Part shown: positions 2,249 through 51,372 of the stretch, piece by piece
Layout: each line of letters starts with the position of its first letter
How positions within the stretch are numbered: the stretch's first letter is position 1
Source of the DNA: Octopus sinensis
Taxonomy: Eukaryota
Direction: 5' to 3'
DNA: 64,000 bases
NCBI RefSeq assembly: GCF_006345805.1
Contig: NC_043003.1
Coordinates: forward strand, 80,290,001 to 80,354,000
The notes under the pieces: generated by a model
What the model saw: the letters and a program-made list of their open reading frames with translations, nothing else
The model's database searches: none
Told to the model about the DNA's origin: nothing
Made by a program: the position numbers and the translations under genes

Positions 2249-2653
2249 TTATATATATATGTAGACAACCTCTGAAACGTTTTGACCTGGGTCCAATAAA
2301 CTGTTAGGGGTCTTAAATCTGAACAGGATCTGCGGTCTTTCAACCAATGAAAGTCTACATTTACTCGATCCAGTCACATAAGTTAAGCATTTCTCATTTA
2401 CTCTCCATTTAATCACATGCTTTGTTTTGTTATCTTTCAAAGTCCATACGTAGCTAGTCAAATTTGTAGCCTTACCTTTATCCCTATTTTGGAAGGAGAC
2501 TGTGTGATTAGGATAACGTGTTTTAAATCCACCATCACATAATCCACTATAGGTCATCTTATTAGTTGTGCTAGTATTTAGTGTTGCAGTAACTTCTGCC
2601 TTATATACAGGGGGCGTAAGATGTTTGAGGACAGATTTATGTTTATGAAGCAA
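2249..2653 (-). mobile_element. Penelope-like element relic, GIY-YIG endonuclease domain
   Basis: ORF PVYKAEVT...TYSGLCDGGFKTRYPNHTVSF...TNLTSYVWTLKD...IKW...CRLSLVER follows the PLE GIY-YIG pattern (VIYKA..., YIG.TE..FK.RY.NH..SF, LS.YIW.LK, C.LCL.EK). Confidence 0.75.
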
Positions 2654-4110: not shown

Positions 4111-4874
4111 GTTTCTTTATTGGCCACACAGGGCTGCACACAGATGGGACAAGTTACAAGGTAGAGCTTTTCTTTTGGGGGATGAAGAAAACAAAAAACA
4201 AAAGAAAAAAGGGGGTGGCGTAGGTTTTCGATCAAGAGGGATCGTAAAAGGGAAGAAAAGAACAAAAACAAAAAAAAATTGAATAAAATAAAAAGAATAA
4301 AAAGAATAGATAGATAGATAGATAGATAAATAGATAGACAGATAGATACCTACGCTTATTTTATTTATTTATTTACCTATATATTATGAGCGATAGTCCA
4401 TAATTTTGTTATTTATATAGGTAAAAAAACAGTAAATTCTTTGGATATTTAATATCCCTTAGGTGGTTATTTAACACATAACTAAGTTTTTATCTTTTGC
4501 ATAGATTCTGCTTATTTATTTGCTACTTTTTAGCATCAGTAAATATATTTGTCTGATATAGAATATTACTAGATAATAGAAACTATTACAATTGACACAA
4601 CTCTTAAAGACATACCAATACCTCAAAAAAAAATTTATATGATAGAACGTATAGCCAAAATAACAAACTTCATGCATAGACTAAGATAGAGAAATTTTTA
4701 TTACGATGAAGACCAAATGAATATCACTAATTACAATACGGATAATAGCATGGATTTTACCTCTGGACTATTTAAAACCAGGAATAAGCCATTACATAAT
4801 AACCTCCTCGAAACATTTGAACAAGAACTATGGACATTTTAGCTATAAAGCCAATCTCCCTCTTTCTTTATAAT

Positions 4875-18742: not shown

Positions 18743-18972
18743 TGTTTCTTTATTACCCACAAGGGGCTAAACACAGAGGGGACAAACAAGGACAGACATA
18801 GGTATTAAGTCGATTACATCGACCCCAGTGCGTAACTGGTACTTAATTTATCGACCCCGAAAAGTTGAAAGGCAAAGTCGACCTCGGCGGAATTTGAACT
18901 CACAACGTAACGCAGACGAAATACCGCTAAGCATTTCGCCCGGTGTGCTAACGTTTCTGCCAGCTTGCCGCC
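18743..18972 (-). mobile_element. Full-length tRNA-derived SINE (tail ...ccccttgtgggtaataaagaaa)
   Basis: Minus strand: ggcggcaagctggcagaaacg (A box), gagttcaaattcc (B box), body gcctttcaactttcggggtcgataaattaagtaccag, 3' tail. Other copies at 35245-35603 and 51070-51310. Confidence 0.9.
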
Positions 18973-19964
18973 TTTTGGGACTACCGTTGCCTGAAGCAGA
19001 TACGGATTGCACACAGTATTTCCGAAGAATAAGGAGACAAAATATTGTGTTATAACTATGTATAAGATTTTCTTGTTTTGTAGACCACACATCAGCTACT
19101 GTTTCACCAAACATTAAACGAGAAACAATGCAAATGAAAATTATCACATCTTGTTGTTTTCCCTTGATGTTGTGTATTTTTCAACACAAGGATTGTGTGG
19201 GTGAAGGAAGTTTGAAATTGGGTGGCGATTTATGGTACCTGTGTCCAAGTGTCTACTCGTGAATATAAATTTTCTTGAGTGAGATCTGTTCGACAAGGTA
19301 AAAGCAACAATTGAAAAATAAAGCAAAGCTCATAGTTTTATATATGGAAGTGAGAGAATTACACGTATATTCCACTCTTTCAGTATCTCTCTCACATATT
19401 TTTTACAAGAATATAATAAGGTCCAAAGTAGACTACTGATCTCTTCAGTATGTTACAGCAGGGAACATAGGCAGCGGCGACTTGGAAATACATCTAAAAC
19501 ACCTGCACAATTAACGGAATGTAGACGAACAATATGGAAGTCGTAGCGGGCATATCTAGTGGCGTTGTGCTAAATGATATTGCACAACTCGTCTGTATTG
19601 AATTATATGCATTGCTATCTAAATGTAGTGCTTATCACTTGAATTTCTCCAGCCCTTGTAACCGAAAGTAGGGCTTTATAAAAGCAATTTTTATGATCGT
19701 CTGCAACTTATATATCTTCTTTCTTGAGAAGTTTTTATGTAACATTCCTAAAATTTTAAATGACTGAAGTGCAATTGTTTATATGTTGCAGACCGTCATA
19801 AAGTATTTTCTACATGTATTCGTTAGGTGATTGAAATTTCTGTTTGGTTTTATCCAGGTTACTGTGGCTTCAGTGTTCGATTAGAAAAGCATTTTGTATT
19901 CATTTTCATAACGCTTTGTAATATCTGTATATGAATTCTTTGTGAGTGTGTGTATGTGTGAAAA

Positions 19965-23489: not shown

Positions 23490-24640
23490 ATGTTTACATG
23501 TTAGATGAATATGTACATGGATAAGCAAGAACGCACAGCACTCAACATCTGCCGCTCGTGCATTTTCTTCTCCAGGTACGTTGATGATATGCTTATCATC
23601 ACGTCCTCCAGGGATGAGGCCATTAATATACACCAGACCTTCAATAACACTGACATAAACATCAAATTCGAGATTGAACATCCAGACAAATCCAGAATCT
23701 CAACTTCCAACTGAAGATCACAGAGGAAGATTCCATATTTGCCAAATTCTACAGAAAAGCCGCTAATAGAAAACTTTTCGTTCACTACCAATCAGTCTTA
23801 CCCACCAGAGCCAAAGCCGCATATGTGAGAAACGAGATTGTACGTATAAACAACTATTGCAGTAACGTGACCGAAAAAGCCGTCAACAGCAAACAATTGC
23901 TCAGAAACCTAACACTGAATGGCTACACACCATCTTTAGCTAAACAAAAGCGCCTGAAGGACATCAAGGTCAATAAACTCTGGAAGAATAATCATACTCC
24001 CAAGTTCGGCAAGTGCTTCTTAAAACCACTAAACTTTGACGATAGAACTACTGCAGCGATACAACACGCAGTTCGCAGGGAAGGACTCGCCATACAGATA
24101 GTGTACGCTGGCCCTTTCCTGAAGAAAGCTCTTTCCAAGAACAACACCTCTCACTACTCCGAGGAGTGCACATTGTCGAACTGCCCCATGAATGACCCTG
24201 AATTGTGTCAGAGGACCTATGTTGTATATGAGATCATCTGTGGCGCTTCCTACAGAGGAATTATGCAGGAAAATTGCATATACGGATTAAGGAAGACATG
24301 CAAGCAGGGACTGCCGTGAAGAAAGATCTACGGAAATGCCAGATTCGGGAATACACAGTGCACATCAAGGCAACATAACGTAACAGGGACAACTTTAGAA
24401 TCTCTGAGGCCATCCTCATACACCAAAAGAAACTGAAGAGAGTTATAGGAAGCTAGCCGATTACTATAGCAACACCTTTCTGCACATGTCCACTCCACAC
24501 ATGCTCACACGCACGGACATCGGCAACATTAATTTATTTCTTGAAAATGGGGTCATAACCCCGAAATATTGAATACAAAGTAAGTCTACATTAATTCACA
24601 TATTTGTTTTCTTGTGATTTACCTTGCATTTACTTTGCAT
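23490..24640 (+). mobile_element. 5'-truncated Penelope-like element (RT C-terminal half, linker, degraded GIY-YIG, tail)
   Basis: FFSRYVDDMLII (RT YxDD), IKFEIEHP, FYRK..N..F.HY.S (thumb), VRNEIVRINNYCS...NGY, VVYEIIC (GIY-like). Frameshifted. A degenerate hammerhead-like hairpin (ttgaaaat-ggggt-cata-acccc-gaaa) lies at ~24541-24566. Confidence 0.85.
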
Positions 24641-35244: not shown

Positions 35245-35603
35245 CGGATTAAGTTGATTATACTGACCTCAGTGCTTAACTGGTACTTATTTAATCGACC
35301 CCGAAAGGATGAAAGGCAAAGTCGGCCTCGGCGGAATTTGAACTCAGAACGTAGCGGCAGACGAAATACCTATTTCTTTACTACCCACAAAGGGGCTAAA
35401 CACAGAGAGGACAAACAAAGACAGACAAACGGATTAAGTCGATTATATCGACCCCAGTGCGTAACTGGTACTTAATTTATCGACCCCGAAAGGATGAAAG
35501 GCAAAGTCACCCTCGGCTGAATTTGAACTCAGAACGTAACGACAGGCAGAATACCGCTAAGCGTTTCACCCAATGTGCTAACAATTCTGCCAGCTTGCCA
35601 CCT
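35245..35603 (-). mobile_element. Head-to-tail SINE dimer
   Basis: The full copy at 35371-35603 has its 3' end (aaagaaata) joined to ggtatttcgtctgcc inside the head of a second copy at 35245-35370. Confidence 0.85.
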
Positions 35604-35768
35604 TTGAATTACGAATAACCTTCAGACTAAAAATGTCCGACTGCTTTGGTATTAACATCGCAACAAGTTGTTTAAATATTGCAGTCTATTTACATATGCG
35701 AGAAATAAATGCCCTTCCACCCGACGGGACTATGGTAATGAGGTTTATTTCTGTGTGTTTATAGTTTA

Positions 35769-36483: not shown

Positions 36484-37899
36484 AGCATCGTTATACGCAG
36501 TTGAGGTATTGTATAGGATAGCCTTCTATGTAGCCTAATTAATATATCTATTATGTTCATAGGTCAATTACTGTAGTATTTGTCTTAAGATAACCTATCT
36601 CTTAATTAGCCGCAAGCTAATAGAAATTTAGGCTATGCAAGAACAGCACTAAATAAATCAACAACATTACTGCGAACTGTGAGAGAATGTGTGGATGTGT
36701 AAGTGTATTTGTGTGTGTGTGTGTGTACGTGTGTATTGGAAATATAATTTCGGTACTTTTATTGAAAAGTACTCCATGAAACGGTTTCTTCAGAGCTATG
36801 ACTATTGTCTGAAGAGCAAATGAAGCGAATAGAAAATATATGGTCTATTGCACACAAAATACACATTTTAAATACCTTATTAGTTCATGTCCTATGTATA
36901 TTTTCGCTGAATATAATCAGCCGGAGTTAAAGAAGTTTATGCTAGCTTGTCTGCCTTATATGCCAGGAGCTATCTATAATCGTTGTGGAACCTTTGACCG
37001 AACAGAAAGCGAAGACGAATCATCCGCTGAATGGAGTCGGTGTGAAAAGAATTTCTCTTAAAAGAGACATGTTTATCATGGCTTACACAGCGAGATAATC
37101 TCACAAAGCCACAAACTCCATCTCTGTCTGTCTATCTGCCTGTAACGTCTGTATACCTCTCATTCTCTCTCTTTGGTTCACGTATTGGTATCTGTTCCAT
37201 AATTTTCTGTTTATTGGTGTGAACAAAGTTTTGTATGAACAAGGTTACTTAACGGTTTGATAAATATGGATCAACATCCTAAGCCAGGGGTCGACATGAT
37301 CGGTTAAACCACTAACGTTGGGTGCCCAATCATAGCGGCATTCGTAGTGACAACAATCGTGAAAGGAATATAAAAAAAATACGGCACAAATGTTGAAAGT
37401 ATATGTTGAGACAATAAACGTTGTGATGATAATAATTTACATGCTATTATTTAAAGCATTTGTTATGATATGGGTATACACGTCTGATGAAAAATGGTAT
37501 TACACAAATAAATTGTTGGCTGTGGTGTTCTAAAATAACCTAAAACATAAATGTTAACACAGAACTCACTCCGAACATAGATAAAATATTCAGCATTCAC
37601 TGTTCAACTACCGACATCTAAAACGACGAATTAACACAGTAAACTAACCGGGTCGAACTAACACCGTCAATTACTATTTCTTTATTAGCGAATAATGACC
37701 CAATATAGAGAGGGCAATACATGGATAGACAAGACAAGTGCGGATATAAAACATAAAACAAGGAATGATAATGAATTATAAATAAATGAATGTGCAATGG
37801 CTACTCGAATCCCACTCTACTTAACTGTTCTTTATCAAAGTTTTTTATATCTTTTTGTCTGTGGTAGCATGTGTGTGGTCGTTCCGTATTTTTCTGTTT

Positions 37900-39130
37900 T
37901 ATAATATTAAAACTACTTGCATGTTTTTCCAGTTTATATACGGTTTCAAATCGTCATAGTCCACGACTGAAGGTACGGTGTCATATGACACCTCTACTCC
38001 TAATGGGTCTATGTTTAAACCGAACAATACATTTAATTTAGCATATCTTTCCTAGTCTACTAGTATATATTTTAATGTTTTCTGTATAATCTTCAGTCGG
38101 CAATTTAACTCTAATCACCAATTTGTACTTGATGATTTTTCGTTCAATTGCCGTGCTCTTTCTGTACGGGGCCTTTTCAGGGACTGTGTGTTATGCCTGT
38201 CTGTTTCTGTTTGTTTTAAGGTGAACTTGGACTATCTGGGGCGGTTTCTTTTCTTTTTGTTAGTGTTACTGGTGGTGATGCATGCTGTGTGAATGTATCG
38301 TGTGTGTTTGCCTAACAATTTCTTCTGTTTCACTATTCTTCCTTTTCTTTTTGGGACTCTTTGGGAGGGTATTTATTATTTCCTTTCTCTTTCTTTTGAG
38401 TACTTCTGTAAATCACTCTTCTTCTTTACCAACCGTACACATCTCCTGGGCTGGCCTTGTCATTTCGGTAATCCAACTTTGTTCGTGCTGGTTTCATTGG
38501 TTGTCTGGGGACACTTCATTTTAATGTGCACCTTTTCTCCGCAGTAGTAGCATGTTGGAGGTCTCCCTTCTAACACAACTCTCAGTCTTATATCCTCAGG
38601 CAGCAACACATCTTCTGCTAATTCGTTCAGGTCTTGCTGGATGACCTGAATAGCCATTTCCAAACCGTAACCGTACCAATTCATTTTCTTTGTTCTTGCC
38701 ACTTGTAAAATCTTTGTGTCCTCGTGGGTTCCATGCATCACGGCTTTTACCAGCCACGCTTCTTTAATTTCCGGTGGTACCCTGACTATCCTAATTCTTG
38801 CTACTCTTTTGCTGAAGTTGGTCGGCAGGAGTACTCATTCTTGTGACCCCAGCGTCACAGTGGAGTGATGTATTGTCTCTTGTTCGGTGGCAAACCTCAC
38901 ATCCACTGTGCCGTGTTTTCTACCTGTAGTGTAGAATGTTACAACGCTACTTCTTCCAGACATTTTTCTATAGCTTCTTCTGTAGCTATCTCAATCTTTT
39001 TACTGTTTGTTGACAGTGTTCTGTAAACCACTGTCCTCCTGACACCTCCTTCCGGATCAACGCGTTGTACTCTTGCACCTTCTCCATAGCTCCCGGCAAG
39101 TTCTTGAACTGGTTCTCAATTCATTTCATT
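37900..39130 (-). pseudogene. Unit A: divergent, decayed ORF1-like gene
   Basis: DVLLPEDIRLRVVLEGRPPTCYYCGEKVHIKMKCP (38460-38741) matches unit E PDETRLRVVVEGRPPICYNCKSRGHMKDVCP. C-terminal SYDTVPSVVDYDDLKPYI (~37930-37990) matches RYDKLPDVIDHTDLLDYM. Confidence 0.85.
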
Positions 39131-39599
39131 TTTCGAGTCTCTTCACCCAAAAATGAGGGAAAGAAAAAAAACACAAAAAAACACAGGCCCACAAACAAAA
39201 CGGCAACAGTATTCAATAAAATTCAACAACTTCAATCATAGCACACCCGCAGGGTAGAGCCTTTAGCAAAATATAACACGACATATCTGCGACAGGAATC
39301 ACAAATGATTTAACAGAACTAGCAACCATTTTAAAGAATTAGTTTGGCACTACGGCCATAACATAGAGGGGACAGCACAAGGACAGACAAAACAATACAT
39401 TGGGGCGTATAAAAACACATTATGAATATAATTAATGTGAGAATAACATGGCTTTCCTACCCCTCAAAGTAGGTAGTTCCATTTTACTCTTATTTTAATT
39501 TACAGTCTTACTTTACAGTCTTGTGTCTTTTCCTTAACACATAATTGCAACAAATGCGGCTTTATATCGTCAAAACATGCAACAGCCGGCATCACGTCG

Positions 39600-40815
39600 T
39601 ATCTATACTTAAATGATGTTATTTCAGCTCTTTTTTTCCCCTAATAGTTCTACTAACCACTCCCCTCTTTCTCTCTCCAACAGCACACCCTTCTTACCGT
39701 CATGGTTTGCCATTTTCACTCTGATAATATTTCTCGTTTTTGTTACTCTTTTCAATTTCGGCGTCTTTTTCATATACTGTGAGACTTCATAAGCTTCTCC
39801 CTGTAGGTATCGTTCTCTGATATACTTTACCACTCTCTTCGTACATCATGAATATCTCTGTCTCTACTTCGCTGTCTCTTTCGTTTCCTTCCTTGCTAGT
39901 TGAAGGTGACGGTTCGTGCGTTCGCATTTCACTTGATTTTTCATTTGGTTTTCCATTTCTTCTCTTTTCTTTCTTATTCACCTCTTCGTTTGTCTTTCTT
40001 TTTTCTCCTTCGAACTTTTTGGTGGTAATTCCAAGTTCCTTTTCTTTTCACCGCCGTAAATGGCTCCTCCTTTACGGCTGTACTCTCCTCTTCTTGAATT
40101 TCTTTTTCTGTTATTTCCTCCTAGTGTTTCTGGGGACACTTGGCCTTCATGTGTCCCCTTACACCACACACAAAAAAATATTGGAGTTCTACCCTCCACA
40201 ACAATCCTCAACCTAGTCTCATCCGGCAACACCAGCTCTTCCACGATGTTATGGATGTCTGGCAGACATATAAGGGCTGTCATATCTAACCCAGTAGTTC
40301 ACATCGTAGTTTGGGACATGGTAGAGGTTGGCTGCCACCAGTGGTGCCTTGTCAGTTTCAGGGGGCACTCTACCTATCCTTACTCTGGCCGCAAGCTTGC
40401 CACAGTAACGCAGTAGTGCTCATTAAGCTGATCTCAAGGACACAGTGGAGTATTTCTTTGCTTCATTTTCATTTACAAAGCTCACCTCTACCGTGACGAA
40501 ATTCCGTCCTCCGGTGTAGAACGTGGTACAGTCCTTCACCTCTCTTAAACACTCCTCTACTGCTTCCGTCGCTATTATTTCTACTTTCTTCGTTGTTTAA
40601 CGTTTTGTAGATACTAGTTCTTTTCTCGGTATTCTCAATAACTTCTTTGGGAGGCGTCACACTAAGACAGTCTCCCTCCTTTTTCAACAAGTCGTTACAC
40701 TTCTTGAAATTCTTGTCTTTAACTTTTATTTCACGGACTTGCAGTAGCTCTGCTGACAAGCTTTTGTCAGTCACTGTAGCATAACTTCCCGCTTGTACTG
40801 GACTATTTTCCATGT
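39600..40815 (-). pseudogene. Unit B: divergent, decayed ORF1-like gene
   Basis: LKKEGDCLSVTP..EKRTSIY (cf. LKREGDCVRVTP..EKRTITY) and EELVLPDETRLRIVVEGRTP; knuckle broken by a frameshift; C-terminal-domain remnant at 39624-39833. Confidence 0.85.
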
Positions 40816-41283
40816 TATTTAGCACTTCAACCATAAATAGGAAAGACAAATAAAAATTCCAACAAATTCAGGAAATAACAGGTTTACAATAACAGGTTAA
40901 GAATTACAGTACCAACATGGAACTGTCTCGAACACACCAATTGAACAAACACTGCCATTAACAGAACTAACAGCGGATTTTTTTATTACCCACAAAGGGG
41001 CCACGAAGAGGGGGACATTACAAGACGGGACATGGGGTACATAAAATAAAAATAAAATATGAAGTAAAGATGAATTATATGTAATGAGATGGAACGGCTT
41101 ACGAACCCCCAACTCGCAGTTCCGTTTAAAATACAATTGTACATTTCATATATTCCAGTTCAAAATACAATTTTACAGTTACATATATTCCAGTTCAAAG
41201 TACAATAACTTTACAATTTACATTACATATATTCCTGTTCAAAATACAACTTTACATCTTACAATTTTACAATTCTAATTCTT

Positions 41284-42626
41284 TTATATTGGACGTTCGT
41301 CCGTCATATAATCTAATAGGTCCATTTGGTCTATTACATCTGGTAATTTGTCATACCGTACATAACGCGTTATATGAATAGCATTAAATATCTTTTTTAA
41401 TTTTGTGTATGTTTCTTTTTCTATAATGACGCCTTTTACATCGTCACCATACAGTTTTGGGTTCACCTTCACCCTGACCAACCCTTTCCTACCTGCAAGT
41501 CTCTTTTCCACTTCTGTATTCTTGATATACATCACAACTGCTTTCAGGTTTTTTCCTGTAGGCCTTCTTCCATATTTACACGATTCCAACTGTTCGTTCA
41601 CTCTTGTCTCCCATTCTTGTTCAAACTCTGTCCTTGGCCGCTCTCTCGCCTTCTCTTTCACTTCCTGTTCTTTGCATGTTCTCTCTTCTCTCTCTTCTGC
41701 TATCTTGCTTTTGATTTTTTTCTTTTTAAGATCTTTCGGTGGTGATTCCACCCTTGATCTCTTCCTATCTTCTGTTTTTTCCTCTTCTGCACTTGCTCGT
41801 TCTTCCTCATTTAACTGCTCCTCCATTCGTGTTTCCTCCGTTTTCGCTTCCTCCACACACGCATCTTTACACTCCTCTATCACAACCTCTGGTGTTTTTG
41901 TCTTTTCCCGCGGGCACACATCCTTCATGTGGCCCCTCGATTTACAATTATAGCAAATTGGGGGTCTTCCCTCTACCACAACTCGGAGCCGAGTCTCGTC
42001 AGGGTAGACCAACTCCTCCGGGATGTTGTACAGGTCTCGCACGGTTATGTGTGCCAGAACCTGCACTGTATATCCCCACCACTTCACCTCTGCTGACTTC
42101 TCCACCTTCAGTACCTCCACATCATCCTTGCAGTTAAACAGCACTGCTGCCAGAACCTTTCCATATTAAATTCGGGTGAGATTCTATTGATTCTCATCCT
42201 CACTGCTCTCCTTCCGCAGTAACTTGGTAGCAAAGTCCACTTATCCGATTTCAAAATCCTTGTTGCATTCTTTTTTGCCTCATTTTCTGTTTCAAAATAT
42301 ACCACCACCGTGGCATATTTCTTTCCTCTTTTGAAAAATGTGGGTTCACCCTCAATTTCCTTCAGACACTTTTCTACTTCTTCCATTTCCGCTACTTCAA
42401 TTTCTTTCGACTCCACACACCACGTCCTGTACGTTATAGTACGCTTCTCTGCACTGCTTTCCTCCTCCTCGGACGGTGTGACTCTTACGCAGTCACCCTC
42501 CCTCTTTAAACTGTCGAAATACTTTTGTAAAGTCTTCTGTTCGACCACCACCTCCTCCATCTCCAGTTCACCGGCAACCAGGCCTCTGCCTGCCGCTCGC
42601 GCGTAAGTCTGCTCTTGCATTATCAA
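41284..42626 (-). pseudogene. Unit C ORF1-like gene, 1-bp frameshift
   Basis: Split into ORFs 42108-42626 and 41284-42144; gccagaacc versus gccagcaacc in the other units (~42155). Confidence 0.9.
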
Positions 42627-43028
42627 GAAAAAACTTTATTCCACGTCCTCCAACGAACTCTAACTCACAACCTCTTCACTCGAAATAAACACACCAGAAC
42701 AACTCCAAATAACTCACAAACAGAACTAACAGCGTATTTCTTTATTACCCACAAGGGGCCACGAAGAAGGGGACATTACAAGACGGGACATGGGGTACAT
42801 AAAATAAAATAAAATATGAAGTAAAGATGAATTATATGTAATGAGATGGAACGGCTTACGAACCCACAACTCGCAGTTCCGTTTAAAATACAATTGTACA
42901 TTTCATATATTCCAATACAATTTTACAGTTACGATAATTTTACAATTTTACATGTTAACATTACATATATTCCTGTTCAAAATACAACTTTACATCATAC
43001 AATTTTACAATTAACAATTCTAATTCTT

Positions 43029-44375
43029 TTACATTAGACGCTCGTCCGTCATATAATCCAACAGGTCCGTATGGTCTATCACATCTGGTAATTTATCATA
43101 CCGTACATAGTGCGTTATATGCATAGCACTAAATATCTTTTTTAATTTTATATATGTCTCTTTGTCTATAATGACGCCTTTTACCTCGTCACCATACAGT
43201 TTTGGGTTCACCTTCACCCTGACCAACCCTTTCTTACCTACAAGTCTCTTTTCCACTTCTGTATTCTTGATATACATTACAACTGCCTTCAAGTTTTTCC
43301 TGTAGGCCTTCTTCCATATTTACACGATTCCAATTGTTCGTTCACTCTTGTCTCCCATTCTTGTTCAAACTCTGTCCTTGGCCGCTCTCTCTCTCGCCTT
43401 CTCTTTTACTTCCTGTTCTTTGTGTGTTTTCTCTTCTCTCTCTTCTGCTATCTTGCTTTGGATTTTTTTCTTTTTTAGATCTTTCGGTGGTGATTCCACC
43501 CTTGATCTCTTCCTGTCTTCTGTTTTTTCCTCTTCTGCACTTGCTCGTTCTTCCTCATTTAACTGCTCCTCCATTCGTACTTCCTCCGCTTTCGCTTCCT
43601 CCACACACGCATCTCTACACTCCTCCATCACAACCTCTGGTGCTTTTGTTTTTTCTCGCGGGCACACATCCTTCATGTGGCCCCTCGATTTACAATTGTA
43701 GCAAATTGGGGGTCTTCCCTCTACCACAACTCGGAGCCGAGTCTCGTCAGGGTAGACCAACTCCTCCGGGATGTTGTACAGGTCTCGCACGGTTATGTGT
43801 GCCAGAACCTGCACCGTATATCCCCACCACTTCACCTCTGCTGACTTCTCCACCTTCAGTACCTCCACATCATCCTTGCAGTTAAACAGCACTGCTGCCA
43901 GCAACCTTTCCATATTAAACTCGGGTGAGATTCTATTGATTCTCATCCTCACTGCCCTCCTTCCGCAGTAACTTGGTAGCAAAGTCCACTTATCCGATTT
44001 CAAAATTCTTGTTGCGTTCTTTTTTGCCTCATTTTCTGTTTCAAAATATACCACCACCGTGGCATATTTCTTTCCTCTTTTGAAAAATGTGGGTTCACCC
44101 TCAATTTCCTTCAGACACTTTTCTACTTCTTCCATTTCCGCTACTTCAATTTTTTTCGACTCCACACACCACGTCCTGTACGTTATAGTACGCTTCTCTG
44201 CACTGCTTTCCTCCTCCTCGGACGGTGTGACACTTACGCAGTCACCCTCCCTCTTTAAACTGTCGAAATACTTCTGTAGAGTCTTCTGTTCGACCACCAC
44301 CTCCTCCATCTCCAGCTCACCGGCAACCAGGCCTCTGCCTGCCGCTCGCGCGTAAGTCTGCTCTTGCATTTTCAA
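43029..44375 (-). pseudogene. Unit D ORF1-like gene, 4-bp (CT)n slippage frameshift
   Basis: gccgctctctctctcgcc at ~43381-43398 versus gccgctctctcgcc in C and E; split ORFs 43365-44375 and 43029-43292. Confidence 0.9.
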
Positions 44376-44739
44376 GAAAAAAATTATTCCATGTCCTCCA
44401 ACGAACTATAAACACACCAGAATAACTCCAAATAACTTACAAACAGAACTAACAGCGGATTTCTTTATTACCCACAAGGGGCCACGAAGAAGGGGACATT
44501 ACAAGACGGGACATGGGGTACATAAAATAAAAATAAAATATGAAGTAAAGATGAATTATATGTAATGAGATGGAACGGCTTACGAACCCCCAACTCGCAG
44601 TTCCGTTTAAAATACAATTTTATATTTCATATATTCCAATACAATTTTACAGTTACAATAATTTTACAATTCTACATGTCAACATTACATATATTCAAAG
44701 TACAACTTTACATCGTACAATTTTACAATTCTAATTCTT

Positions 44740-46083
44740 TTACATTAGACGCTCGTCCGTCATATAATCCAACAGGTCCGTATGGTCTATCACATCTGGT
44801 AATTTATCATACCGTACATAGTGCGTTATATGCATAGCACTAAATATCTTTTTTAATTTTATATATGTCTCTTTGTCTATAATGACGCCTTTTACATCGT
44901 CACCATACAGTTTTGGGTTCACCTTCACCCTGACCAACCCTTTCTTACCTACAAGTCTCTTTTCCACTTCTGTATTCTTGATATACATTACAACTGCCTT
45001 CAAGTTCTTTCCTGTAGGCCTTCTTCCATATTTACACGATTCCAATTGTTCGTTCACTCTTGTCTCCCATTCTTGTTCAAACTCTGTCCTTGGCCGCTCT
45101 CTCGCCTTCTCTTTTACTTCCTGTTCTTTGTGTGTTTTCTCTTCTCTCTCTTCTGCTATCTTGCTTTGGATTTTTTTCTTTTTTAGATCTTTCGGTGGTG
45201 ATTCCACCCTTGATCTCTTCCTGTCTTCTGTTTTTTCCTCTTCTGCACTTGCTCGTTCTTCCTCATTTAACTGCTCCTCCATTCGTGCTTCCTCCGCTTT
45301 CGCTTCCTCCACACACGCATCTCTACACTCCTCCATCACAACCTCTGGTGCTTTTGTTTTTTCTCGCGGACACACATCCTTCATGTGGCCCCTCGATTTA
45401 CAATTGTAGCAAATTGGGGGTCTTCCCTCTACCACAACTCGGAGCCGAGTCTCGTCAGGGTAGACCAACTCCTCCGGGATGTTGTACAGGTCTCGCACGG
45501 TTATGTGTGCCAGGACCTGCACCGTATATCCCCACCACTTAACCTCTGCTGACTTCTCCACCTTCAGTACCTCCACATCATCCTTGCAGTTAAACAGCAC
45601 TGCCGCCAGCAACCTTTCCATATTAAATTCGGGTGAGATTCTATTGATTCTCATCCTCACTGCTCTCCTTCCGCAGTAACTTGGTAGCAAAGTCCACTTA
45701 TCCGATTTCAAAATTCTTGTTGCATTCTTTTTTGCCTCATTTTCTGTTTCAAAATATACCATCACCGTGGCATATTTCTTTCCTCTTTTGAAAAATGTGG
45801 GTTCACCCTCAATTTCCTTCAGACACTTTTCTACTTCTTCCATTTCTGCTACTTCAATTTTTTTCGACTCTACACACCACGTCCTGTACGTTATAGTACG
45901 CTTCTCTGCACTGCTTTCCTCCTCCTCGGACGGTGTGACTCTTACGCAGTCACCCTCCCTCTTTAAACTGTCGAAATACTTTTGTAAAGTCTTCTGTTCG
46001 ACCACCACCTCCTCCATTTCCAGTTCACCGGCAACTAGGCCTCTGCCTGCCGCTCGCGCGTAAGTCTGCTCTTGCATTTTCAA
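44740..46083 (-). CDS. Intact 447-aa Tx1/L1-type ORF1-like nucleic-acid-binding protein (unit E)
   Basis: Uninterrupted ORF. RRM-like segments (YATVMVYF; RMRINRISPEF), VVVEGRPPICYNCKSRGHMKDVCP = CX2CX4HX4C knuckle in the context typical of L1/Tx1 ORF1, E/K/R-rich linker, conserved ~80-aa C-terminal domain. Confidence 0.88.
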   Translation of the reverse strand: MKMQEQTYARAAGRGLVAGELEMEEVVVEQKTLQKYFDSLKREGDCVRVTPSEEEESSAEKRTITYRTWCVESKKIEVAEMEEVEKCLKEIEGEPTFFKRGKKYATVMVYFETENEAKKNATRILKSDKWTLLPSYCGRRAVRMRINRISPEFNMERLLAAVLFNCKDDVEVLKVEKSAEVKWWGYTVQVLAHITVRDLYNIPEELVYPDETRLRVVVEGRPPICYNCKSRGHMKDVCPREKTKAPEVVMEECRDACVEEAKAEEARMEEQLNEEERASAEEEKTEDRKRSRVESPPKDLKKKKIQSKIAEEREEKTHKEQEVKEKARERPRTEFEQEWETRVNEQLESCKYGRRPTGKNLKAVVMYIKNTEVEKRLVGKKGLVRVKVNPKLYGDDVKGVIIDKETYIKLKKIFSAMHITHYVRYDKLPDVIDHTDLLDYMTDERLM

Positions 46084-46475
46084 GAAAAAAAAAAAAAAAA
46101 AAAATTATTCCACGTCCTCCAACGAACTCCAACTCACAACCTCTTCACTCGAAATAAACACACCAGAATAAACACACCAGAACAACTCCAAACAACTCAC
46201 AAACAGAACTAACAGCGTATTTCTTTATTACCCACAAGGGGCCACGAAGAAGGGGACATTACAAGACGGGACATGGGGTACATAAAATAAAATAAAATAT
46301 GAAGTAAAGATGAATTAGATGTAATGAGATGGAACGGCTTACGAACCCCCAACTCGCAGTTCCGTTTAAAAAACAATTACACATACAGTTTTACAGTTAC
46401 AATAATTTTACAATTCTACACGTCAACATTACATATATTCAAAATACAACTTTAAATTTTACAATTCTAATTCTT

Positions 46476-47799
46476 TTACATTGGACGCTCGTCCGTCATA
46501 TAATCCAACAGGTCCGTTTGCTCTATAACATCTGGCAATTATCGTACCGCACATAATGCGTTATATGCATGGCATTAAACATCTTTTTTAATTTTATATA
46601 TGTCTCTTTGTCTATAATGACGCCTTTCACGTCGTCACCATACAGCTTTGGGTTCACCTTCACCCTGACCAACCCTTTCTTACCTACAAGTCTCTTCTCC
46701 ACTTCTGTATTCTTGATATACATTACAACTGCCTTCAAGTTTTTTCCTGTCGGCCTTCTTCCATATCTGCACGATTCCAATTGCTCGTTCACTCTTGTCT
46801 CCCATTCTTTTTCAAACTCTGTCCTTGGCCGCTCTCTCACCTTCTCTTTTACTTCCTGTTCTTTGTCTTCTCTCTCTTCTGCTATCTTGCTTTTAATTTT
46901 TTTCTTTTTTTGATCTTTCGGTGGTGATTCCACCCTTGATCTCTTCCTGTCTTCCGTCTTTTCCTCTTCTGCACTCTCTCGTTCTTCCTCACTTAACCGC
47001 TCCTCCATTCGTACTTCCTCCGCTTTCGCCTCCTCCACACACGCGTCCTCCATCACAACCTCCGGTGCTTTAGATTTTCTCGCGGGCACACATCCTTCAT
47101 GTGGCCCCTTGATTTACAATTGTAGCAAATTGGGGGTCTTCCCTCTACCACAACTCGGAGCCGTGTCTCGTCAGGGTAGACCAGCTCCTCCGGGATGTTG
47201 TACAGGTCTCGCACGGTAATGTGCGCGAGAACCTGCACCGTATATCCCCACCATTTCACCTCCGCTGACTTCTCCACCTTCAGTACTTCCACATCATCCT
47301 TGCAGTTAAACAGCACTGCTGCCAGCAACCTTTCCATATTAAATTCGGGTGAGATTCTATTGATTCTCATCCTCACTGCTCTCCTTCCGCAGTAACTTGG
47401 TAGCAAAGTCCACTTATCCGATTTCAAAAGTCTTGTTGCGTTCTTTTTTGCCTCATTTTCTGTTTCAAAATATACCACCACCGTGGCATATTTCTTTCCT
47501 CTTTTGAAAAATGTGGGTTCACCCTCAATTTCCTTCAGACATTCTTCTACTTCTTTCATTTCCGCTACTTCAATTTTTTTCGACTCCACACACCACGTCC
47601 TGTACGTTATAGTACGCTTCTCTGCACTGCTTTCCTCCTCCTCGGACGGTGTGACTCTTACGCAGTCACCCTCCCTCTTTAAACTGTCGAAATACTTTTG
47701 TAAAGTCTTCTGTTCGACCACCACCTCCTCCATCTCCAGCTCACCGGCAACCAGGCCTCTGCCTGCCGCTCGCGCGTAAGTCTGCTCTTGCATTTTCAA
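46476..47799 (-). pseudogene. Unit F ORF1-like gene, two frameshifts plus in-frame deletions
   Basis: 1-bp deletions at ~47070 and ~46535; in-frame losses (MEDACV vs MEECRDACV; REDKEQE vs REEKTHKEQE). Confidence 0.9.
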
Positions 47800-49659
47800 G
47801 AAAAAAAAATTATTCCACGTCCTCCAACGAACTCTAACTCACAACCTCTTCACTCGAAATAAACACACCTGAATAAACACACCAGAATAACTCCAAATAA
47901 CTTACAAACAGAACTAACAGCGTCAAATACAGTACATTCAGTTCTTATTTATTGTAATCGGTTAGTCCACTTTCAGTCATGTGGGGTGTTCAGGATTTTC
48001 TCATAACAGCATTATGTGTGCGCTTCGTGATATTTTAAAAAGGAATTATTTAATATGTGGTGCTAAATTTCTTTTGCACACTTTCCACAATCCATGTAAA
48101 TATCTTCACATCATAGATTTGTCCCCGGTTTAATGTAAAAGATTTACAATAATTTACTGACGGGTTTCGCGTCGTTGGTGTCAAGAAAATCACTAAGCAC
48201 TCAATTAGAAGATTGTTCCTTTCACTTGGATCTAGCAGTCCTCGGGACATTAATTTAACTCACACCTCCTGGCATTGTATCAAATTTCTGGCAGCTTCTT
48301 ACTAAATCTCGAAGTAAAGTTTGTCAGCTTTGCGCATTTATGTGTCTATCCATGTGAGCTTGTGCGTACCAGGTGTGTGTGTGTATACGTCTGTGTGTGA
48401 TCAATTGTTATAGTTATGCAACCATCCTCTTCTGTTCATGACAACACTATATTCTCATAGTGTAGAACACGTTCTACAGAAAATTGATTGGTTCCGTAAC
48501 ATATGCAGAGGGATATATGCGTCAAGACTACAGCTAAGTTTCTGAATTTATCTCAACGGTCATCAAAATGGTATTATTAAACACTGCTTCTCTAAATCAC
48601 TTATACCTTCGGCAATAAATTCTAATATAATATGATAATTAAAGTTCCAAATGTTACGTAGTATCTTATTAAGGCACCTAGGGATAATTTGAAAATCACT
48701 GTTCATTAATCTATTGATTGATTTAATTATCAAATGATATAGTTTCACATGAAAACCTTGAAACAAAAGGCTACTATGTGAAGACAGGTTTCCAAGGCAA
48801 AATGTCTTTTTGTCTAGTTACTAGCTCCAATTCATCATCTTCTATCCGTTAAAATATTTCTGTCGGTCTTCTGGTACGTTTCCTTACAAGATTAAGATTG
48901 CTCTTTTGAGACCTGTATTTATGTGTACATACATGTATGTATGTGAGTGTGTACGTGTGTGTATATGTGTCTATGTGTGTATATATTTCGGTTAAATGAA
49001 TAATAGAGCATGTAATCGTTTTTTTCTTTATTATAAGTGCACATTATCGGTATTACTGGAGTTAGGTTTATGAATTCCTCATGTGCTTTGTGGTTATTGT
49101 CATTGTGCTTCTTGCTTCTTCCCAGCATGCTGTTGCTGTTGACAAAATGGCCGATACCATACATGTTTTACTATTGCTGCGATACCTCTAGTTTCTTAGA
49201 TAGGATTTATCAGCTGAGAACTTTAAGGTATAGAAATATGTGTCAATGAAAGTTTTGTCTATTATGCTGAGTTGCTAAGCAACTAGAGCATGCTGAAAAT
49301 GCTCCTCATCGTAGAACACTTTAATCAGGATGAATGGTTATAGTGTTCATAACTGGGCATTTAAAGCATTATAAATCAGAACTTTCGAGTGAACTTAGTG
49401 TCAGCAAGTAAACCTTACAAAATAGCATAGGTTGCTACCAAAAGAAGTATTGATTTTCTTTGCGTCACATGTTTTTGTCCTCCATTTTATGATCTTGAGC
49501 GTTTTGATCAATTCTACCTCTCACTACAAACTTGTGGCTTCAGTGTAAAATTTATATGGTAAAATTTGTGTCTCAACTCAAATTCTAACAAAGTGTATGT
49601 TCAGAAATAAATTCTCAAAACGAAATTCAAATCCTTTGATTCCCTCATAAATATTAAAC

Positions 49660-50939: not shown

Positions 50940-51372
50940 CTTTTAATTTTGGCACAAGGACTTCAGTATTGAGGGAAGGAAGACGTGAAGTACATCTAAA
51001 CCAGAGCTCAACCGGTAACCACTCTATCGACCACGTAGTGTTGAAATTTTAAATCAAAACGTAAATACCTATTTCTTTACTACCCACAAGGGGTTAAACG
51101 CAGAGGGGACAAACAAGGACAGACAAACGGATTAAGTCGATTGCATCGACCCCAGTGCGTAACTGGTACATATTAAATCGACCCCGGAAGGATGAAAGGC
51201 AAAGTCGACCTCGGCGGAATTTGAACTCAGAGCGTAACGGCTGACGAAATACGTCTACGCATTTCGCCCGGCGTGTAAACATTTATGCCAGCTCGCCGCC
51301 TTTTCTAGCTCGCCGCCTTCAAAGCGTAAATACCGTTAAGTATTTTTCTGGCAGGCTAACGATTCTCCAAGT
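50940..51372 (-). mobile_element. Young SINE (51070-51310) nested in an older SINE with ~16-bp TSD
   Basis: tcaaaacgtaaatacc on the left (ending ~51069) and tcaaagcgtaaatacc on the right (~51319-51335); the flanks are body and head remnants of the same family. Confidence 0.75.

Follow-up and report, generated by a model that had tools for sequence, protein, structure and literature searches.

Head-to-tail arrays of retrotransposons that lack long terminal repeats (non-LTR elements) are formed at Drosophila telomeres by several families, HeT-A, TART and TAHRE, and the gag-only HeT-A relies on the reverse transcriptase of another element. HAL1 (half-L1) is a mammalian L1 derivative that has only open reading frame 1 (ORF1), and its copies are dispersed and poly(A)-tailed. 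The present analysis deals with an array of six ORF1-only units in a 64,000-nucleotide stretch of the Octopus sinensis genome (contig NC_043003.1, positions 80,290,001 to 80,354,000; hereafter the window), in which a reading made earlier from the letters alone (the sequence-only reading) had pointed out a junction motif at every unit boundary. The window was compared with 215 kb of related Octopus loci; for the three subfamilies of the array (A, B and C), the analysis covered the copies in the window. Tandem SINEU-3 copies in crocodilians, which sandwich a target-site duplication (TSD), have been put down to Tx1 elements inserting one after another (Kojima 2015, PMC4494074). No description of ORF1-only or mixed arrays of long interspersed elements (LINEs) in octopods was found in the searchable literature.

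The octopus array resembled the Tx1/SINEU-3 case in the L1/Tx1-type ORF2 domain set, in non-autonomous partners that carry the LINE 3' tail, and in what appears to be repeated insertion at one site that re-creates the target between head-to-tail copies. It differed in that the joints repeat 12 of the 20 duplicated bases and not a full TSD, in that the units are 1.7-kb, protein-coding and ORF1-only and fall into three subfamilies, and in that no multicopy host target was found in the 215 kb compared and the joint is apparently in part the element's own 5' terminus. Of the marks of Tx1-type sequential insertion, different insertion times were found, while the same full TSD at every joint was not. 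With the Drosophila telomere elements it shared the head-to-tail joining of several non-LTR families, including a gag-only type of element using a foreign reverse transcriptase. It lies, however, inside the chromosome with a TSD and unique sequence on both sides, lacks oligo(A) joints and variable 5' truncation, belongs to another LINE clade and gave no indication of a telomere role; a telomeric retrotransposon array was rejected on the TSD and on the unique, non-repetitive flanks of 37 kb and 16 kb. Like HAL1, the units are LINE derivatives that kept ORF1 and the partner 3' end and lost ORF2, but they are clustered and end in a specific tail without poly(A). The array is a variant of known behaviour, and no new class of system was revealed. 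The explanation that we favour, at about even confidence, is that retrotransposition struck the same few base pairs repeatedly, at a resident copy's 5' boundary, and that in this way six ORF1-only units came to lie within one TSD.

Layout and boundaries of the array

The array spans 37675-47922, with its genes on the minus strand, and contained six complete head-to-tail units of 1648-1760 bp, each with a 5' untranslated region (UTR), ORF1 and a 3' UTR (Table 1). The units belong to subfamilies A, B and C (C1-C4); nucleotide identity was 49-54% between A, B and C and 94-98% among C1-C4. A 12-nt core, GAACTAACAGCG, terminates each unit. The 16-mer AACAGAACTAACAGCG was exact at 40960-40975, 42719-42734, 44442-44457, 46202-46217 and 47907-47922, and was present with 3 mismatches at 39312-39327; all six sites are unit boundaries. 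At up to 3 mismatches the 16-mer gave 7 matches (0.52 expected), a number never reached in shuffles. In gene sense (minus strand), each joint runs from the unit 3' end ..AATAAAGAAAT(A/C) through CGCTGTTAGTTC to TGTT.., with the exception of the B|A joint, where the 12-mer is GGTTGCTAGTTC.

The 20-mer GAACTAACAGCGTCAAATAC was exact at the upstream edge, had 2 mismatches at the downstream edge and was found nowhere else in the window (0.00 expected); the two array-edge copies are thus identical at 18/20 positions. Only these outer copies have 8 additional bases before the 12-mer, GTATTTGA at the upstream edge and GTAATTGA at the downstream edge, and the internal joints hold 12 of the 20 bases of the outer repeat. 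The similarity of the two outer copies ends abruptly at both sides, and in the downstream flank CGGTG-TTAGTTC is followed by divergence (GACC) precisely where a duplication would stop. About 3 nt beyond the downstream flank repeat there is a further sequence resembling the motif, CCGGTTAGTTTAC, so that the motif region is doubled at 37640-37666. Profile searches of both flanks showed no seventh unit, ORF1 remnant or 3'-tail remnant, the flanks had no significant similarity to the unit UTRs under two scoring schemes, and no alternative TSD was found farther out in the flanks.

The terminal ~60 nt at the 3' side of the units (..TGTCCCCT..GGCCCCTTGTGGGTAATAAAGAAATA) were common to full-length LINEs and to a tRNA-like short interspersed element (SINE), as shown by a tail profile. 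Copies of the SINE with clear TSDs of 9-16 bp terminate exactly at ..GAAATA without poly(A), which shows that this end marks the start of reverse transcription and that the unit 3' boundary is a true retrotransposon 3' end. At the SINE 3' junctions GGT(A/T) came next in 6/6 copies and GGTATTT in 4/6, and the readable TSDs begin there. The outer array repeat likewise starts with GTATTT, directly behind the 3' end of unit A. Because it opens with this usual insertion motif, the outer repeat is best read as a true TSD, a reading also supported by its 18/20 identity, its uniqueness in the window and its sharp edges, and the 3' edge of the array would be an ordinary target-primed reverse transcription (TPRT) junction at the preferred site of the family. 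Both marks of a LINE-mobilised non-autonomous element were thus present, namely a 3' end shared with an autonomous LINE and flanking TSDs. The strings and coordinates given by the sequence-only reading proved exact, its unit types agree with the identities above, and its views that the units are retrotransposon copies and that the outer repeat is a TPRT-derived TSD were supported. A conserved 3' stem-loop with covariation is not claimed, as the candidate stems fell in differing alignment registers.

Besides the SINE copies in the window (Table 1), further copies were found at L007 (460-693 and 10441-10674) and L009 (~420-649), and in two cases one SINE copy was nested within another, at the GTATTTC site that the SINE itself contains.

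Table 1. Coordinates of the array, its parts and other features of the window
Feature	Coordinates	Strand	Description
Upstream (gene-sense) flank repeat	47911-47930	-	GTATTTGA (47923-47930) + CGCTGTTAGTTC (47911-47922); read as upstream TSD copy
Downstream flank repeat	37655-37674	-	GTAATTGA (37667-37674) + CGGTGTTAGTTC (37655-37666); directly after unit A 3' end
Unit A	37675-39327	-	ORF1-only, old pseudogene; 5' joint 12-mer GGTTGCTAGTTC (39316-39327); 3' end ..GCTAATAAAGAAATA
Unit B	39328-40975	-	ORF1-only, second subfamily, old pseudogene; exact 12-mer at 40964-40975
Unit C1	40976-42734	-	Young subfamily, one frameshift, mosaic; 12-mer at 42723-42734
Unit C2	42735-44457	-	Almost intact: 336-aa ORF, one frameshift near C-terminus; 12-mer at 44446-44457
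Unit C3	44458-46217	-	Sole intact unit; 12-mer at 46206-46217
Unit C4	46218-47922	-	5'-most unit; frameshifts and in-frame deletions; 12-mer closing at 47922
Intact ORF of C3, 447 aa	44740-46083 (ATG at 46077)	-	LINE ORF1-type: N-terminal domain, one putative CCHC knuckle, acidic/basic linker, conserved C-terminal domain
Conserved 3' tail	44458-44519	-	..TGTCCCCTTCTTCGTGGCCCCTTGTGGGTAATAAAGAAAT[A/C]; found in 6/6 units, full-length LINEs and SINE
tRNA-like SINE, ~230 nt	18743-18980	-	Carries the 3' tail of the array units
tRNA-like SINE, ~230 nt	35371-35605	-	Carries the 3' tail of the array units
tRNA-like SINE, ~230 nt	51070-51305	-	Carries the 3' tail of the array units
Other element end	4112-4161	-	Matches the 3'-tail profile (E=2.9e-8); adjoins a (TATC)n microsatellite
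ORF, 313 aa	31355-32296	-	Terminal GIY-YIG-like motif (..NLIYCIKCQNCEEIYVGQTG..)
Shorter ORF	23825-24319	+	Similar GIY-YIG-like motif
Shorter ORF	2249-2653	-	Similar GIY-YIG-like motif

Encoded protein, ages of the units and related loci

An intact ORF was found in C3 alone among the six units. A look-up of the exact C3 protein sequence matched no record, word-indexed protein searches with the whole C3 protein and with its N-terminal 239 aa gave no matches, and the relatives surfaced with an exhaustive HMMER search, which returned 384; the named ones are all octopod (Octopus bimaculoides, O. vulgaris, O. sinensis and Argonauta hians). The Pfam zf-CCHC match at residues 222-237 was weak (E=0.0018, 18.7 bits, under the 20.8-bit cut-off); the CxxCxxxGHxxxxC motif is visible in the protein, and the homologue P0002 exceeds the cut-off. 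No sequence match to the C3 protein was found among solved structures. At L001 and L009 (O. sinensis) and L006 (O. vulgaris), the frame behind a homologous ORF1 was an ORF2 that carries Exo_endo_phos, RVT_1 and zf-RVT domains, a set that by domain architecture corresponds to the L1/Tx1 type. L1-Tx1 families are reported to have been recently active in O. vulgaris (PMC13282606). A tblastn search of 37675-47922 with the L006 ORF2 gave no match, and because the array has no ORF2 the units are non-autonomous and derive, as ORF1-only elements, from an octopod LINE whose ORF2 is of L1/Tx1 type. Relatives of the C3 protein are carried as annotated genes in Octopus genomes, which is a warning for annotation: many Octopus "uncharacterized CCHC proteins" are array-borne copies of a retrotransposon ORF1.

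Units A and B are far older than the C units. Unit A contained about 7 in-frame stops and at least 1 frameshift, and unit B about seven or more in-frame stops and at least 3 frameshifts, whereas the private changes of the C units included zero stop codons, with 0-3 frameshifts or deletions per unit. This difference indicates that the C copies arrived well after A and B, and exactly at B's upstream boundary. Private substitutions in the C block numbered 45 in C1, 8 in C2, 13 in C3 and 45 in C4. The C units are mosaics: C1 has a 5' half of C2/C3 type and a diverged 3' half, and C4 has C2/C3-type ends and a diverged centre. The edge units C1 and C4 are thus older than the central C2 and C3, growth was not strictly polar, and the pattern points to copies entering at internal joints and/or to gene conversion together with unequal crossing-over.

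The ratio of synonymous to non-synonymous private coding changes was 19:16 in C1 and 27:16 in C4, where random mutation would give 79% non-synonymous changes, and the ratio of non-synonymous to synonymous substitution rates (dN/dS) was about 0.2 on both branches. This strong bias to synonymous sites indicates that the changes accumulated while purifying selection was acting, be it in active source lineages or in functional copies, and not as decay; the ORF was thus under purifying selection before the copies decayed.

Several shorter features vary among the units. A T-run (minus strand) lies just before the ATG at 46083-46105 and ranges from ~6 to 23 nt across the C units, at the matching position in C1, C2 and C4; in the L006 units the corresponding place is taken by an A-run of ~30-35 nt. 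The 3' UTRs of the C units carry short tandem repeats of 21-60 bp that vary in copy number (41120-41263, 42940-42995 and 44618-44747), and a 14-bp duplication in the 5' UTR, AATAAACACACCAG, is restricted to C3 and C4 (46153-46182 and 47858-47890).

Arrays akin to that of the window, including arrays of full-length LINEs, were found in three Octopus species. The O. bimaculoides loci L002 and L003 held ORF1-only arrays whose joints pass from ..TAATAAAGA(N)4-5 directly to the next 5' UTR. O. vulgaris L006 contained at least 3 full-length LINEs head to tail (99% identical, period 5.28 kb), and O. sinensis L009 an ORF1-only unit with four full-length units behind it, which are only 75-89% identical. 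In O. vulgaris L005, two copies of the 11-nt repeat TGCTGGGTTCG enclosed an intact ORF1-only unit, after which came the decayed 5' fragment of a further unit, and in L008 a unit was followed by a 215-nt 5' fragment.

Origin of the array

The case for repeated insertion starts from a disparity: the identity between A, B and C is only about 50%, but that of the repeat flanking them is 90%, and A and B are rich in stop codons whereas the private changes of the C units create none, which argues for independent arrivals. Unit A would have come first by ordinary TPRT, with a nick at the GTATTT site and duplication of ~13-20 bp (GTATTTGA-CGSTG-TTAGTTC). The reverse transcriptase of a partner LINE would next have copied RNAs of B type and afterwards of C type, and these would have been inserted into the same few base pairs, immediately upstream of the 5' end of the copy already there. 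Each time, the end of the new complementary DNA (cDNA), complementary to the conserved 5' terminus YTAGTTC-TGTT, would have annealed to that terminus at the boundary of the resident copy, and this pairing would re-create the 12-nt joint. Any joint of the array would be open to renewed insertion, so that growth would be only roughly polar, and the C block may later have been reshaped by gene conversion and/or unequal crossing-over. Repeated insertion implies an empty site ..AATGTACT-GTATTTGACGSTGTTAGTTC-GACCCGG.. in which the motif is present once.

The proposed pairing rests on the make-up of the joint. Related ORF1-only elements start with CTAGCTC-TTTTGAG (L005) or GCTACTC (L004, the second L005 fragment and L008), and these starts align with TTAGTTC-TGTTTG and CTAGTTC-TGTT of the window. 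The seven bases at the 3' end of the 12-mer together with TGTT (YTAGYTC-TGTT) therefore look like the family's own 5' terminus, which leaves CGCTG as the sole remaining stretch of the 12-mer that is possibly pure target; we infer a composite joint of 5 nt of target and 7 nt of element terminus.

Four points weigh against repeated insertion. The internal joints lack both the 8-nt GTATTTGA and a GGTA/GTATTT start, and without the usual nick motif the later events would have needed a different first-strand nick (GA|CGCTG), the cause of which is unexplained. TTAGTTC already stands in the downstream flank, which requires a chance microhomology of 7 nt, genuine specificity for the target or an earlier resident copy that has since been lost. 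None of the three was demonstrable, and UTR and ORF1 comparison showed no older unit in that flank. The 5'-most unit of the C block, C4, is not the youngest. Finally, the full-length arrays of L006 and L009 abut directly with no sandwiched repeat, which fits end-to-end template jumping or exact insertion at the boundary equally well.

These observations modify the model of the sequence-only reading, in which the motif was a TSD regenerated at each event and new copies landed upstream of older ones. The outer TSD and the precedent of sequential insertion (PMC4494074) agree with regeneration; the internal joints, with 12 of the 20 bases and no usual nick motif, cannot all have formed in the manner of the founding insertion. 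The order of arrival holds for the young C copies, which lie exactly upstream of the decayed B and A, and fails within the C block, where the outer C1 and C4 are diverged, C2 and C3 are youngest and mosaics occur. Its other suggestion, that the motif is the element's own 5' end and possibly an initiator, is matched by the 5' ends of related elements as far as TTAGTTC(TGTT) is concerned, but the motif as a whole is composite. The likeness it drew to spacer addition in clustered regularly interspaced short palindromic repeats (CRISPR) is superficial only. Strictly polar growth is ranked below repeated insertion, as are origin in a single event and divergence of a gene family in place.

A single event is unlikely, though it survives better than the other rivals. 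The reverse transcriptase would have jumped end to end between RNAs in one TPRT reaction, or a multi-unit read-through transcript would have been retrotransposed, the 12-mer being the 5' end of each RNA. This would suit the one TSD shared by six units, of which only the 3'-most adjoins the usual GTATTT-type site, the exact abutment of 3' and 5' ends at the internal joints, and the L006 and L009 arrays, which abut without sandwiched repeats and combine diverged units. The stops in A and B (~7 or more each), set against none from the private changes of C, imply unequal ages unless dead copies were mobilised, and one event leaves unexplained both the presence of CGGTGTTAGTTC in the downstream flank after the 8-nt GTAATTGA and the identity of the target-derived and internal 12-mers.

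We consider it less likely still that the array is an old tandem gene family, in which unequal crossing-over multiplied one retro-inserted ORF1 gene and A, B and C arose by divergence in place, with the motif as a transcription start or initiator. Purifying selection on the ORF, the conservation of YTAGYTC across families and the annotation of relatives as genes are what such a family would show, and the homogenised centre, diverged edges and mosaic units of the C block resemble the concerted evolution of tandem gene arrays. Concerted evolution nevertheless leaves unexplained why three subfamilies diverged by 50% are joined at the same nucleotide within a well-preserved TSD. A neutral 20-mer cannot survive saturated divergence, and the flank repeat is 18/20 identical against ~50% for the units. 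Crossing-over between the 20-mers would also leave all 20 nt at the joints and not the observed 12. Moreover, arrays at other loci combine full-length LINEs with ORF1-only units of different subfamilies, and the 3' tail is that used by a mobile SINE.

True sequence-specific targeting is the most improbable of the three. Here the machinery would recognise a multicopy target with GTATTTGACGSTGTTAGTTC, as Tx1L recognises Tx1D, and the array would be one of many. Target specificity is found in many elements of the Tx1 clade, whose tandem copies have TSDs sandwiched between them (PMC4494074), and the L005 repeat TGCTGGGTTCG resembles the 12-mer in GCTG..GTTC. However, the 12-mer and the 20-mer were absent from the 215 kb of related Octopus loci with homologous elements, and the joints of the other arrays differ in sequence. 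The sequence-only reading had raised the question whether the motif lies in a multicopy RNA gene or repeat: the window flanks matched no repeat in the related loci, and an Rfam scan of 36500-49000 gave only chance microRNA-like matches in a TG microsatellite, with no RNA gene and no hammerhead or other ribozyme at the joints. A known structured RNA gene as target (ribosomal RNA, small nuclear RNA, spliced leader or tRNA) was rejected, as no Rfam family was matched by the motif or the flanks, and an empty site derived from an old SINE copy was rejected because the reconstructed empty site had no match to the SINE profile. A spliced-leader operon and the R-U-R terminal redundancy of retroviruses were dismissed, since both predict unit-12mer-8mer at the 3' edge and the order observed was unit-8mer-12mer.

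Returning to repeated insertion at the 5' boundary, a wider proposal can be put forward only tentatively: octopod LINEs with L1/Tx1-type ORF2, together with the ORF1-only elements that parasitise them, may home in on the 5' boundary of relatives already in place, the conserved 5' terminus serving as a landing pad, and may build internal head-to-tail arrays of mixed subfamilies genus-wide, with the ORF1-only units kept by selection, as a non-telomeric counterpart of the Drosophila telomere arrays. If repeated 5'-boundary insertion is true, it would provide a simple rule for the nucleation and growth of LINE arrays away from telomeres and ribosomal DNA, and would point to a lineage of ORF1-only elements with selection acting on the protein, in genomes whose LINE activity is debated.

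Other observations in the window and related loci

At one mixed-array joint of L009 (9333-9360), a 28-nt spacer consists of stuttered copies of the 5' end of the next unit (ACTGAA..), which recalls the doubled motif in the downstream flank of the window. A palindromic module of ~330 bp lies upstream of ORF1-only units at L008 (8760-9240 and 11117-11325) and L004 (9340-9887 and 11706-11780); it is partially repeated downstream and ends at the identical base (..ACTTTAT) in both, an LTR-like or partial-tandem layout. This palindromic element was tried as a common target and rejected, being absent from the window. The ORF1-only unit of L008 lies inside the range of an annotated O. sinensis Wtap-domain gene and is itself annotated as a separate protein-coding gene.

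A Penelope-like element with a pseudo-LTR arrangement was also rejected as the identity of the array, as the partner ORF2 is of the apurinic endonuclease plus reverse transcriptase type and the GIY-YIG ORF of the window is a separate element. By inspection only, this 313-aa ORF resembles the C-terminal part of a Penelope-like element, and similar motifs were seen, likewise by inspection, in the two shorter ORFs (Table 1).

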